Assembly (NCBI RefSeq): GCF_001194135.2
Contig: NC_068982.1
Coordinates: 103,434,494 to 103,475,064 of the forward strand
Direction: 5' to 3'
DNA length: 40,571 nt
Source: Octopus bimaculoides
Taxonomy: Eukaryota
Shown in pieces: positions 398 through 27,340 of this stretch; the first letter of the stretch is position 1; every line of letters begins with the position of its first letter. The notes under the pieces are model-generated. The model worked only from the letters and a program-made list of their open reading frames with translations. It ran no database searches and was not told the DNA's origin. The position numbers and the translations under genes were made by a program.

Positions 398-444
398 TCA
401 TCGTTCGGTACGATTCAGATAAGACAGTAGAATGTGCTGGTGCA
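398..444 (-). CDS. Probable terminal coding exon (LHQHILLSYLNRTER*), followed by 3' UTR toward position 1
   Basis: Long polypyrimidine tract ttctttcatgctttcttttcatttcttttccag|TG. A phase 1 entry reaches TGA at 398-400. No AATAAA seen in the remaining 397 nt. Confidence 0.7.
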
Positions 445-527
445 CTGGAAAAGAAATGAAAAGAAAGCATGAAAGAATAAATGAATAATCATTTCGAATG
501 AAAAATAACGACGACAACGACAGCAGC

Positions 528-731
528 AATAATAATAATAATAATAATAATAATAATAATAATAATAATAATAATAATAATAATAATGATGATGATGATG
601 ATGATGATGATGATGATGATGATGATGATGATGATGATGATGATGATGATGATGATGATGATGATGATGATGATGATGATGATGATGATGATGATGATGA
701 TGATGATGATGATGATGATGATGATGATGAT
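528..731. repeat. Compound microsatellite (AAT)20(GAT)48
   Basis: Read directly. Explains ORFs 489-977, 498-758 and 586-771. Confidence 0.97.
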
Positions 732-2360
732 CCTTTCTACTATAGGCGCAAGGTCTGAAAGTTTCAGGTAGGGGACAAGTCGATTCCGTGTAAGGAAAAG
801 CAATTTAAGGACTTTCTGGTCAGAAAGTCTAAAAGAGCTAAAACAACAGCAGCAAGGAAGCATGAGGGCTTCTGATCCAAATGGTACAACTCTAGACTCG
901 TAAAAAATCAATCCATTCTCATTATCGGAAACCAACCATCTAAGAGACCCTCGAACTCCTTCTTCCAATGGGGACAATGAAAATAATTTAAAACAACAGT
1001 AGCAATGGTGGAGATTAAATCAGCAGAGACCCTCTCCTCACAGCAGTGCCACTCCATTATGAAGATGGAGAATAGACGGAAGCTGAAGATCTGTAGACAT
1101 TTTTTGCAAAGACTAAATATGACTCCCCCCCCCCCCGCTTGCCCAAAGAACAACTAAGGGAAATAGTTAAAAAGTGTAGTAGAAAGCGTACATCTCCCCT
1201 GGAAAGGAAATGCTTTCCAGTGAAGTGTTCCTCCATGAAAGTGAACTCATCTTTTGTAAAGAGAAGAATTTCTCTAGTACGAAGTCCATCTCCAGTGAAA
1301 TGACCCTCACAACCAGTCAAAGGGCCAACAAAAACGTAATAGAATATTTATATGAGCTGCACAGGGAGGGTCCAGGCAGGAGAAAGCATCAAGCTACAAA
1401 GAACTCTCAATGATCTCGAGGAACTTGTTGTAAACAAGTGATAGGTTGTTATTGTTGTTACTTAGCCACAAGTAAGCCTTGATCGAGCAGACCTAGAGTC
1501 AAAAATATTCTAGTAGTGAATATTCAGTTTTATTTTTAGGAATAGTACATATAAAGCTATATTATTTATTATGCCCTTCGTTTTTTAAGATTGTAAAATG
1601 TAGTTTGAAGAAATGTGGCTGCTATTTCTAGCACATCGAATAACCACATAGAGGTTTGAAAATTACTAAGCTCAGATGTTCACTTCCGTTTATGTTATAG
1701 AGGAATGATTTTCGCCAGGATGACCTGCCTAGAGATATTACACAAAAACTTGATTTCAGTAGCGCCTTTATCACACTGTGATCTACTATTCGTTCGTTAT
1801 AACTCTAATTAGACTGAAAATTAGTCAAGTCAGTGACAATTTTCAACTGAAGACTATTCAAACATTTGATGAACGTTTCATTTTATTTTGTTGGGAATAT
1901 TTTGTTCTATATAGTATGATATTCTAGTTCATGACATTCTTTTGGAACACACACACACACACACACACACACACTCTCTCTCTCTCTCTCTCTCTCTCTC
2001 TCTCTCTCTCTCTCTCTCTCTCTCTCTCTCTCTTTCTCTCTCAACTAGGTCTTCTTAAATTTTCTCCTATATCTTTGTCTAAATTGTTCCAACAGCTGGT
2101 TATATCGTTAGATATAAGGTGTAAGGGTCATAAATGAAGACGAGCTGCTTTTGTCAGCGTTCAGTCAAGCGCTGAAGGTGAACACATGAAGTATCAGTTC
2201 CATATATGTAGGTAATATTTTATGAACGCACTCCATATGGAGCGTTAGTTGTACAGAGCAATATTTTGATTGAGATAAATTTCTCATCTTTCTAAAGCTC
2301 ATAATTTTTTTTTTATACAACAGTAATAAAATGAATCAACGAAAATATTGTATTACTTAC

Positions 2361-25662: not shown

Positions 25663-25773
25663 TACATACATACATACATACATACATACAAACATGATGG
25701 CCGTCCAATGGTCTTCCTCAGTCACGAGTGGACGGCCATCATGTATGTATGTATGTATGTATGTATGTATGTA
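25663..25773. repeat. Inverted repeat embedded in TATG/TACA microsatellite
   Basis: Perfect 16-bp arms ACATGATGGCCGTCCA (25692-25707, 25729-25744) around a 21-nt spacer, extended by (TACA)n/(TGTA)n. Confidence 0.8.
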
Positions 25774-27171
25774 TGTATGTATGTATGTATGTATGTATGT
25801 ATGTATGTATCTATCTATCTATCTATCTATCTATCTATCTATCTATCTTAACCATGATAGTTTGTTATAGTTTCAGATCTACGTATATGCTGAGTAGTTT
25901 TTTTTTATAAACACCATTATTTTTACCTCATATTTCATTTGATCCCTTCTCTGTTACACCCTTACCCTTCCAGTTTTACCCTGTCTCCTGAACTTCATAA
26001 ATCCCACAAGTTGAAATTTACAAAAGAAACTATAGCCGAACAGCTGTGTTAACCATTCGAAGCTCTGTCTCTATTCACGTCACTCGAGCTCATTGCTTAA
26101 GGAATATTTCAGTGACAGCCATGACATAGTGTTGTGTAATATGATCTGTTAGAGGAGGGAACTGAGATAACTGCCCACACTTTTCCTGATTTATTTATTA
26201 CTATTGTTATTGTCACGCACTCCAACCCCGACTTCCATAAATAGTCACATGGAAATAAAACGATTGCTTTCTTTTATTCTCTTCTGCAGTTTTTGCTTGT
26301 TTGTTTTTTTTTTATCTGAAGTTCTGTTATGTTTTTTACACAAGGAATTTTCAAATGAAGATCTTTCTCTATTTCTCTGTTTTTCTTTCCATCGTATCCA
26401 TTTTTTCAACTTACTTTCGCACCCACTCTATCTATCTATCTATCTATCTATCTATCTATCTATCTATCTATCTNNNNNNNNNNNNNNNNNNNNNNNNNNN
26501 NNNNNNNNNNNNNNNNNNNNNNNNNNNNNNNNNNNNNNNNNNNNNNNNNNNNNNNNNNNNNNNNNNNNNNNNNNNNNNNNNNNNNNNNNNNNNNNNNNNN
26601 NNNNNNNNNNNNNNNNNNNNNNNNNNNNNNNNNNNNNNNNNNNNNNNNNNNNNNNNNNNNNNNNNNNNNNNNNNNNNNNNNNNNNNNNNNNNNNNNNNNN
26701 NNNNNNNNNNNNNNNNNNNNNNNNNNNNNNNNNNNNNNNNNNNNNNNNNNNNNNNNNNNNNNNNNNNNNATTTTTCTATTTTTTGTACACGAAACCAATG
26801 GTAGCCTTAATACACAAATAAAAGAATTCTATCCACCAATGCCGTGTTGAGCACTCATTTTCATCGTTCGACATTTACATACGTGTGTGTGTGTGTGTGT
26901 GTGTGTGTGTGTGTGTGTAAGACAATATTACAGTCCCATTTCAACCGGTTTCACACAAGAGTTTAGGAAAACCAATCTCGATACAAAATAAGGTGAAGTA
27001 TGACTATAACATTCTTTTGTATAAATAATTAATATACCTAGTGTGTTGATAGATATACAAGTGTCTATTTTGAGGTGGTGTGGTTTGCGGATTTTTAGGC
27101 AACTACATATATACTAGCTTCTAAGAAATAATGTAGATTGAGGTAATGAATATATGAAGCACTTGGCTTAC

Positions 27172-27340
27172 CCGGGAGTCGGCAGCACAGCACACCCGAT
27201 GCTATGCCTAGTTTAAAATGACACGCATGTTTGAAGTGTGAATCCACGCAGCAACTGGCATCTATTCGCCCACCAGAGATACAAGATGTCAAACCTTGGT
27301 TTTGGTGGGGACAGTCTTTTCCAACGCCAGCGAGGTCATC
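27172..27340 (-). CDS. First visible exon: C-terminal half of Cys-rich module copy 1 (DDLAGVGKDCPHQNQGLTSCISGGRIDASCCVDSHFKHACHFKLGIASGVLCCRLP)
   Basis: Acceptor tttgatag|GAT and donor CCGG|gtaagc. 169 nt, phase 0 to 1. Aligns by eye to exon 5543-5715 (xAGxGxxC...SC...GRID...C......GVLCC). Confidence 0.9.

Follow-up and report, generated by a model that had tools for sequence, protein, structure and literature searches.

The window analyzed here, a 40,571-nucleotide stretch of Octopus bimaculoides DNA, contains eight minus-strand exons of compatible phase which together (1212 nt) encode 403 residues followed by a TGA stop codon (Table 1). This gene model had been proposed in a sequence-only reading of the locus, and its coordinates were reproduced by an independent rebuild. 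The product consists, in order, of the C-terminal half of a Cys-rich module (copy 1), an I-set Ig domain, a complete second copy of the module, and three EGF units preceding the stop. The copy 1 exon is the first one visible in the window. At the other end of the gene, the full-length orthologues aligned (chiton and starfish) stop at the same position as the octopus protein, and the orthologue tails (..NNTTR, ..FDTVR) are similar to its own.

Table 1. Exons of the Cys-rich module gene and assembly gaps within its span (positions in the window)
Feature	Position	Strand	Support
Exon, C-half of module copy 1 (DDLAGVGKDC...GRIDASCC...GVLCCRLP)	27172..27340	-	AG/GT; family HMM E 1.4e-15
Assembly gap, intron 1 (second)	26474..26769		Spanning junction gapless against orthologues
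Assembly gap, intron 1	23579..24089		Spanning junction gapless against orthologues
Exon, first part of I-set Ig	22896..23066	-	Pfam; both flanking junctions gapless against orthologues
Assembly gap, intron 2	17890..18021		Spanning junction gapless against orthologues
Exon, second part of Ig (..DTGLYSCEV..)	10940..11047	-	Pfam; orthologue alignment; L081 equivalent
Exon, N-half of module copy 2 (GC..AC.G.W.GH..LC..GW.VC..GC.A.NA..C)	7444..7684	-	Family HMM E 9e-31
Exon, C-half of module copy 2 (C..MAG.G..C..SC..GRID..C..GVLCC) and start of basic linker	5543..5715	-	Family HMM E 4e-16
Exon, basic linker (KSSKRR) and EGF 1	4294..4404	-	EGF_2 at residues 295-322; orthologue alignment
Exon, EGF 2 and EGF 3	2361..2552	-	Pfam; orthologue alignment
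Last coding exon, 15-codon tail (..LSYLNRTER) and TGA at 400-398	398..444	-	Orthologues stop at the same place

The gene span is interrupted by three assembly gaps, all of them intronic with none in exons, and the window lacks the 5' exons, such that the exon set could be an artefact, either a pseudogene or a chimaera whose parts were joined by scaffolding over runs of N. However, the reading frame is open over all 403 codons, every splice site is canonical (AG acceptors and GT donors throughout), and the 12 module Cys, the Ig Cys pair and the 18 EGF Cys are all retained. All seven exon junctions are colinear and gapless in alignments with orthologues P0001, P0002, P0004 and P0005, and the two that cross the assembly gaps are compatible in phase and show no alignment gap against the chiton, scallop, starfish and annelid proteins. 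Furthermore, an orthologous locus of another species that has no gaps (L081) has the identical exon order, and its readable exon breaks coincide with those in the window: the C-half exon of copy 1 starts at DDLAG, the N-half exon of copy 2 ends with a donor after ..KCTR, the Ig domain is split over two exons (the second at about 8750-8905), and EGF 2 and EGF 3 share a single exon. The region of L081 matching the gapped introns contains no additional coding exon. We therefore consider an artefact to be scarcely credible. The N-terminal half of module copy 1 was not found in 27341-40571 by tblastn and HMM searches of all six frames, and must lie either beyond position 40571 or within the gap at 39139-39596. 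Its counterpart in L081 is at 5771-6073, from which the missing exon is expected to be about 260 bp long with the pattern GC.DG...AC.G.W.GH..LC..GW.VC...GC.A.NA...C..C. We interpret the window, from its sequence, as containing the eight 3'-most exons of a functional gene, with only the signal peptide and the N-terminal half of copy 1 lying outside of it. Two other assignments within the window, a mariner-like fragment at 17053-17440 and a Penelope-like GIY-YIG open reading frame at 38159-38707, were guesses that Pfam did not confirm.

Module copy 2 is complete at residues 150-287, and copy 1 is represented by its C-terminal half only (residues 1-57), with the two lying on either side of the Ig domain. 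The repeat is evident by tblastn, in which the C-terminal half of copy 2 matches positions 27337-27179 (E 1e-7, 32% identity), and with a family HMM, which recognizes both copies and matches only three six-frame pieces of the window, at 7416-7763 (9e-31), 5529-5783 (4e-16), and 27098-27340 (1.4e-15). The Ig domain is matched by I-set and Ig_3 at residues 60-148 (E 1e-15), with I-set (PF07679) scoring 56.7 bits over residues 63-148 relative to a gathering cut-off of 23.7. EGF-type Pfam matches span residues 289-393, within which we count three six-Cys units of the tenascin/teneurin type (C-x3-C-x5-C-..-C-x-C-x8-C, residues 294-390); EGF_2 (PF07974) reaches 32 bits, above its cut-off of 22.1, and EGF_TEN scores 57 bits, which is under its whole-array cut-off of 65. 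There is no transmembrane segment in the window protein, the highest Kyte-Doolittle 19-residue mean being 1.32, and the sole hydrophobic segment of the full-length orthologues is an N-terminal leader, which supports the view that the protein is secreted. The sequence-only reading had described a module present in full and as a C-terminal half around an Ig domain, three EGFs, and a secreted product with no visible transmembrane segment, and each of these elements holds up; its designation of the product as a ligand or matrix protein is consistent with these findings. The window protein has a net charge of +45, with the EGF and linker region being strongly basic, and the pI is between 8.3 and 9.55 in all 13 metazoan proteins tested.

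The family alignment defines the module as a segment about 140 residues long. Twelve of its Cys are invariant or nearly so and presumably form six disulfides; copy 1 has 14. Pfam-A contains no match to the window module, to any of 51 aligned modules (E <= 1), or to the module region of full-length relatives, and NCBIfam also lacks a match. PDB sequences returned nothing relevant with either the single sequence or the profile, and START-domain matches at E ~1 are attributable to chance. We also found nothing relevant in the literature for the module, its motifs, or the orthologue accessions. As judged by these searches the module is absent from Pfam-A, NCBIfam, and the PDB sequences, and is unnamed in those libraries, which agrees with the earlier impression that it is undescribed.

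The pattern of conservation bears on what the module is likely to do. It contains an invariant C-x-x-C (C79 and C82) and a terminal CC (C133 and C134), and His30 is conserved among the animal copies, features that could be expected if the module were catalytic, for example an extracellular hydrolase or an oxidoreductase using the CC or C-x-x-C. However, His30 is lost in the bacterial modules, the even number of Cys fits structural disulfides, and the domains with which the module is partnered are adhesive or structural rather than metabolic, and we regard a catalytic role as very improbable. The only residues kept family-wide are structural ones (Cys, Gly, Trp, and Ala) together with a GR.D motif, from which we infer that the module functions in binding and not catalysis; the architecture suggests that it would be a non-catalytic extracellular binding domain, either lectin-like or protein-binding.

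AlphaFold2 with the alignment of 51 sequences models the module with a pLDDT of 93.8 and a pTM of 0.89, and the single module sequence yields a pLDDT of 44.5. The model is that of an autonomous domain combining alpha and beta elements, with a strand, a helix, a second strand and a second helix followed by a strand-rich half that closes in a C-terminal strand. This order resembles that of the secondary structure elements in C-type lectin-like domains (CTLDs), and one possibility is that the module belongs to the CTLD superfamily as a highly divergent member, acting as a lectin or as a binding domain of the NK-receptor type. Nearly all of the 50 Foldseek matches listed against the PDB are CTLDs (NKG2D, CD23, CLEC-2, NKR-P1, CD94, and Ly49), and the best matches in a viral library are to DUF1566 and herpesvirus C-type lectins, although none is significant in either library (E 0.35-3, probability <= 0.13, TM 0.2-0.37, rmsd 6-13 Å). 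Likewise, hhalign aligns only one segment of the module with NKG2D, GW.VC..D...L with LKVYSKEDQDLL, which we take to be the strand-helix-2 region of the CTLD, but does so with a probability of 0.2%. CTLDs resemble the module in being extracellular, of similar size, mixed alpha/beta, and disulfide-stabilized, but they carry 4-6 Cys as opposed to 12, and to our knowledge their signature WIGL and EPN/WND motifs have no counterpart in the module consensus. Moreover, Lectin_C matches none of the 51 modules, even at E <= 1. Taken together, we view membership of the CTLD superfamily as plausible, if on balance doubtful, and the C-type-lectin-like fold suggested in the sequence-only reading as no more than a lead. 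Defining the module would yield either a confident new family of structures or, within the C-type lectin fold, a very distant branch.

An exhaustive HMMER search recovered 190 relatives at E <= 1e-3 and 104 at E <= 1e-10, with the best two-module matches at 7e-75; a word-index homology search gave no matches with a single module and nine short ones with an alignment. The module-Ig-module-EGF architecture is also found in chiton, scallop, annelid, starfish, acorn worm, tunicates, and a sponge, and the orthologues come from Mollusca, Annelida, Priapulida, Myriapoda, Nematoda, Echinodermata, Hemichordata, Tunicata, and Porifera. Examples include Liolophura sinensis LOC135468071 (XP_064602176), Acanthaster planci LOC110977079, Styela clava LOC120328109, Saccoglossus LOC102800875, Mizuhopecten OWF50963 ('Titin'), and a Sycon ciliatum protein ('adhesive plaque matrix protein 2-like'). 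Their architecture is a signal peptide, a Cys module, an I-set Ig, a second Cys module, and then, in most of them, two or three tenascin/teneurin-type EGFs; they share with the window protein the domain order, a colinear gapless alignment, and a basic pI in the members tested, and are 45-52% identical to the window module. They differ in that EGF number and spacer length vary by phylum (EGFs are more numerous in the sponge), and a long Ser/Thr-rich insert is present in P0003, whereas the window copy is distinguished by its 5' side being cut off by the window or the assembly. Together, these similarities place the gene in a conserved and uncharacterized metazoan family of secreted proteins. In a rough neighbor-joining tree the copy 1 and copy 2 modules fall into separate multi-phylum clades, which indicates that the module duplication is old. 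No vertebrate, Drosophila, or C. elegans protein is present among the 30 relatives looked up for source name, which fits with loss in those lineages, although a set of 30 does not demonstrate it.

Mosaic proteins of the extracellular space are generally interpreted as assemblies of domains already in catalogues, but in this protein, maintained from sponge to tunicate, the two largest and best-conserved blocks lie outside of Pfam-A, NCBIfam, and the PDB sequences. As a consequence the orthologues whose names were retrieved are either unnamed or named from the Ig and EGF filler, much as the sequence-only reading had expected of automated pipelines. In addition to the two names given above, the labels retrieved are 'uncharacterized protein', 'hypothetical', 'neurogenic locus notch homolog 1-like', 'Tenascin', 'Ig-like/EGF-like domain-containing protein', and, for a sponge, 'von Willebrand factor D and EGF domain-containing protein'. 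WIF-1 and VWDE are like the window protein in being secreted with a run of EGFs after a non-EGF N-terminal region, but the likeness derives from the EGFs alone: no WIF domain is detected in the window protein or its orthologues, and no VWD domain in the window protein or orthologues P0001 and P0012. Defining the module would correct these annotations.

The module is not restricted to animals. A single copy is present in the amoebozoan Balamuthia, and a contig profile search with a six-sequence bacterial alignment identified 159 bacterial loci, almost all in Myxococcota, bearing out the mention in the sequence-only reading of similar motifs in uncharacterized invertebrate and some bacterial proteins. 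The myxococcotal modules (e.g. in MBI4517528.1, 'fibronectin type III domain-containing protein', and at loci L001-L030) are homologous to the window module, with E-values down to 1e-17, and share the 12 Cys and the G.W.G, GW.VC, GC.A..AA, GR.D, and GV.CC motifs. They depart from the animal proteins in being present as single copies, almost always at the extreme C-terminus of secreted, adhesin-like proteins (among the 31 ORFs matched at full length, 30 have the module ending 0-3 residues ahead of the stop codon), and in being acidic (median pI 4.5) rather than basic. In place of Ig and EGF they are fused to CarboxypepD_reg, TSP type-3 repeats (26), Laminin_G_3, Stig1, and Dicty_CTDC, as well as to DUF4215/myxo_disulf_rpt, fn3, and nSTAND-WD40. 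The genes neighboring 30 of the Myxococcota loci include no family common to more than three, and offer no operon-level hint.

Myxobacteria are predatory and display multicellular behavior, and the module, once defined, would offer a clear case of an extracellular domain common to them, an amoeba, and animals, with implications for the assembly of adhesion and matrix toolkits. The importance is moderate, as new domains of unknown function are still found regularly and this one is tied to no specific process yet. A tentative and rather unlikely proposal is that the module represents an undescribed extracellular fold other than a CTLD, which is ancient in animals and came to be shared with Amoebozoa and Myxococcota by inter-domain gene transfer; if so, it would define a pan-invertebrate secreted factor with neither a name nor a structure.

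In WIF-1 a domain that binds ligand at the N-terminus precedes heparan sulfate-binding EGFs, and the window protein could by analogy be a diffusible signaling modulator, acting through sequestration of a morphogen or growth factor by its modules. It is secreted without a transmembrane segment, has a binding-type module ahead of an EGF tail and a strongly basic EGF and linker region, and belongs to one orthologue group extending from sponge to tunicate, as we would expect to be typical of developmental factors. Nonetheless, no domain known to bind growth factors (WIF, cystine-knot, IGFBP, or other) is detected by Pfam, and the same module is present on surface proteins of bacteria, which lack such ligands, and we think such a role unlikely. 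We favor instead, as the probable reading, that the module is an extracellular binding domain within a cationic, bivalent protein associated with the matrix or the cell surface. The two module copies, kept apart by the Ig domain, would make the animal protein bivalent, and the strong positive charge across the animal family, with the EGF tail, probably tethers it to anionic matrix or cell-surface glycans. Because the bacterial modules are acidic, the charge is not intrinsic to the module, and any binding to polyanions would be a property of the whole animal protein.

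The gene in the window comprises eight minus-strand exons, which we reconstructed from six-frame translations and inspection of splice sites. All acceptors are AG and all donors GT, the phases are compatible, and the spliced 1212 nt specify 403 residues followed by TGA, exactly the product that the sequence-only reading had proposed. The Ig domain and three EGFs of that reading are also recovered, as an I-set/Ig_3 match at residues 60-148 (E about 1e-15, exceeding the Pfam gathering score) and as three six-cysteine EGFs within the EGF-type Pfam matches at residues 289-393. The cysteine-rich module was said to occur twice, and both sites bear this out: exon 5, the C-half of the complete copy, matches 27337-27179 in a search within the window (E 1e-7), and an HMM of the family finds exactly three pieces in the window, with no other match below E = 3. 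The signal peptide and the N-half of the first module (about 130 residues by comparison with the relative P0001) were not found in the window, and the missing 5' end must lie beyond 40571 or inside the 39139-39596 gap. We regard this identity and architecture as highly likely, and the gene clearly belongs to a known orthologue group that carries no name.

Features of the window, with exons placed by splice-site inspection and translation
Feature	Coordinates	Strand	Remark
Exon 1	27340-27172	minus	second exon of module copy 1; L081 counterpart starts at 7107
Exon 2	23066-22896	minus	
Exon 3	11047-10940	minus	
Exon 4	7684-7444	minus	
Exon 5	5715-5543	minus	second exon of module copy 2; L081 counterpart starts at 11468
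Exon 6	4404-4294	minus	
Exon 7	2552-2361	minus	
Exon 8	444-398	minus	
Family HMM piece	7416-7763		E 9e-31
Family HMM piece	5529-5783		E 4e-16
Family HMM piece	27098-27340		E 1.4e-15
Assembly gap	26474-26769		intron 1
Assembly gap	23579-24089		intron 1
Assembly gap	17890-18021		intron 2
Trinucleotide repeat	489-768		intron 7; about 280 bp
Imperfect trinucleotide repeat	14844-15390		intron 2; about 450 bp
Microsatellite tract	1910-2054		
Microsatellite tract	4383-5190		
Microsatellite tract	7900-8330		
Microsatellite tract	19980-21300		
Microsatellite tract	22000-22730		
Microsatellite tract	25400-25870		
Microsatellite tract	31550-32060		
Reverse-transcriptase fragment	36468-36671	minus	RVT_1 E 7e-6, under gathering score
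ORF	38159-39106	plus	
ORF	17053-17440	plus	

Aligned to the chiton, scallop, starfish and annelid proteins, the 403-residue model has no gap at any of its seven junctions, including both that span assembly gaps, and its C-terminal end coincides with those of the full-length chiton and starfish proteins (..NRTER vs ..NNTTR and ..FDTVR). In L081, an N-free locus of 20.5 kb from a different invertebrate assembly, the complete orthologous gene occupies about 7.5 kb; its exon order is that of the window, and the breaks that could be read coincide. In both, the C-half exon of module 1 begins at DDLAG (HMM position about 91), the N-half exon of module 2 ends at ..CTR, the Ig domain is divided between two exons, EGF1 has one to itself, and EGF2 and EGF3 are encoded together. 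These comparisons argue indirectly that no coding sequence has been lost in the gaps and that exon order and orientation are right; that the exon set is an artefact or a pseudogene is scarcely credible. The intron splits copy 2 at a slightly different site, its second exon starting at the second cysteine of a C-x-x-C (HMM position about 79-84), and because both positions are kept in the window and L081, the difference between the copies is old. In the window these exons are spread over more than 27 kb (398-27340), with introns of up to 11.8 kb, versus about 7.5 kb in L081 (5771-13140); the window genome has thus undergone strong repeat-driven intron expansion.

An exhaustive HMMER search of 1.84 billion representatives returned 190 relatives at E <= 1e-3, of which 104 reach E <= 1e-10; for 30 clusters the name and source were obtained. 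The full architecture is present in a chiton (XP_064602176, 52% identity over the module), a scallop (OWF50963, named 'Titin'), the annelid Ridgeia, Priapulus (named 'notch homolog 1-like'), the centipede Strigamia, the nematode Soboliphyme (partial), Acanthaster, Saccoglossus, Styela and Ciona, and the sponge Sycon (named 'adhesive plaque matrix protein 2-like' or 'VWDE'). In several relatives the entire ORF sits on a contig of 1.7-2.8 kb (e.g. P0007, 495 aa in 1732 bp, and P0003, 636 aa in 2834 bp); these are therefore intronless, most likely transcripts. In a rough NJ tree, copy-1 modules from several phyla group together and copy-2 modules form a separate clade, with the window's copy 2 next to chiton and scallop, and the module duplication is therefore older than the bilaterian radiation. 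The window most likely comes from a mollusc, perhaps a cephalopod.

Similar motifs in bacterial as well as invertebrate proteins had been suggested in the sequence-only reading, and relatives of both kinds exist. Outside animals the module occurs in a Balamuthia protein named 'Tenascin', in a long eukaryote-like protein with LamG, Ig and EGF domains (P0140), and abundantly in Myxococcota, with 159 loci among GTDB species representatives, nearly all in Myxococcaceae, Archangium, Polyangiaceae, Kofleriaceae or Labilithrix. Across 30 Myxococcota loci (L001-L030) there are 31 ORFs with a full-length match, and 30 of them stop 0-3 residues past the module's invariant CC, a strict C-terminal placing that may be required for folding, anchoring or export. 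The N-terminal partners include CarboxypepD_reg domains (an orthologous set of about 1200 aa), 26 thrombospondin type-3 repeats, Laminin_G_3 plus Stig1, Dicty_CTDC repeats, DUF4215/myxo_disulf_rpt, fn3 and, in one protein, nSTAND-NTPase/WD40 with an apparent TM helix by eye; no neighbouring gene is conserved across the 30 loci. One Archangium MAG carries tandem module genes (L005, 3536-4453 and 4595-5614; 306 and 340 aa), the module being last in each.

The module is 138 residues long in the window copy. Alignments of 51 (A1) and 79 sequences show ten cysteines to be invariant (C23, C38, C45, C67, C79, C82, C94, C104, C133 and C134) and C6 and C121 nearly so, with one extra pair in copy-1-type modules and in some of those from bacteria, and the motifs G25-x-W27-x-G29, GW.VC, GC.A.NA, M.G.G, GR.D and GV.CC are conserved. 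The positions conserved family-wide are structural (Cys, Gly, Trp, Ala) plus GR.D, His30 is kept solely in animal modules, and no polar constellation suggesting catalysis is seen across the family; that the module is an enzyme is very unlikely. It has no match in Pfam-A (24,736 models, the newest from 2025), either with the window sequence or over the module region of full-length relatives, and the 51 aligned modules searched one by one gave just five unrelated single matches at E <= 1. Neither NCBIfam nor PDB sequences (phmmer or profile) gave a match. The domain that defines the group is thus absent from Pfam-A, NCBIfam 20.0 and the PDB, and a label may exist in other InterPro members, CDD or AlphaFold DB. 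A literature search by module motifs and orthologue accessions found no paper mentioning either.

AlphaFold2 predicts the module with pLDDT 44.5 when run without an alignment; with A1 it yields a single domain at very high confidence (pLDDT 93.8, pTM 0.89, none of the five models below 93.0). Strands span 20-24 and 42-44 and helices 31-37, 47-53 and 58-63, and the second half is rich in strands, the last of them being 130-135. A C-type lectin-like fold (CTLD) had been suggested from sequence motifs. At the sequence level this fails: A1 aligns to human NKG2D (sequence checked against 1kcg_A) with an hhalign probability of 0.2%, the sole stretch aligned being module GW.VC..D...L against NKG2D LKVYSKEDQDLL. 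At the structural level CTLDs stand at or near the top of the Foldseek listings, with no match significant (E of at least 0.35, TM of at most 0.37). The PDB gives zero matches at E <= 0.001, and nearly all of the 50 matches listed are CTLDs (E 0.5-3, TM 0.16-0.35, rmsd 7-13 A), among them NKG2D, CD23, CLEC-2, NKR-P1, CD94 and Ly49; the best in BFVD are a DUF1566 protein and herpesvirus C-type lectins. The C-type-lectin idea is a consistent lead and is not established; a remote CTLD is a possible reading, though one to which we give only about one chance in three. It is somewhat doubtful that the module is instead a new fold common to animals, Amoebozoa and Myxococcota through inter-domain transfer and defining a pan-invertebrate secreted factor.

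The animal protein is modular, and its sequence marks it as extracellular. Orthologues have a hydrophobic N-terminal leader and no TM segment, and the maximum hydropathy of the window part is 1.32, in agreement with the earlier proposal of a secreted protein lacking a TM segment. The window protein is extremely cysteine-rich (39 Cys per 403 aa) and has a net charge of +45, contributed chiefly by module 2, the KRKRVKSSKRR linker and the EGFs; the animal proteins tested are basic in 13 of 13 cases (pI 8.3-9.55), and the bacterial modules are acidic (median pI 4.5). We tentatively favor, at somewhat under even odds, a model in which the module is a stable, disulfide-stapled binding domain, with which a remote CTLD would be compatible. 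Myxobacteria would add it to the ends of diverse surface or secreted adhesin-like proteins, and in animals two modules spaced by the Ig domain would make a bivalent binder, with the basic linker and EGF tail favoring retention on anionic matrix or cell-surface glycans. That the protein is a WIF-1-like diffusible modulator seems improbable.

The reverse-transcriptase fragment upstream of the gene (..YIDDLKLY..) is probably a decayed non-LTR retrotransposon. The two plus-strand ORFs have no Pfam match; the longer may carry a Penelope-like GIY-YIG domain and the shorter may be of mariner transposase type. Much of the intron sequence is taken up by very dense microsatellites of (CA)n/(TG)n and (TATG)/(CATA) type, whose many Cys/Val- or His/Thr-rich pseudo-ORFs could pass for Cys-rich coding sequence. 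Several frames of the intron 2 repeat lack stops (poly-L, poly-S/N, Cys/Tyr runs), and it therefore yields spurious ORFs of 100-156 aa on both strands. The intron 7 repeat reads as poly-N then poly-D on the plus strand, and as poly-S, poly-H and poly-I in other frames, and directly adjoins the 3' splice site of the terminal exon, 45 bp upstream of its acceptor.
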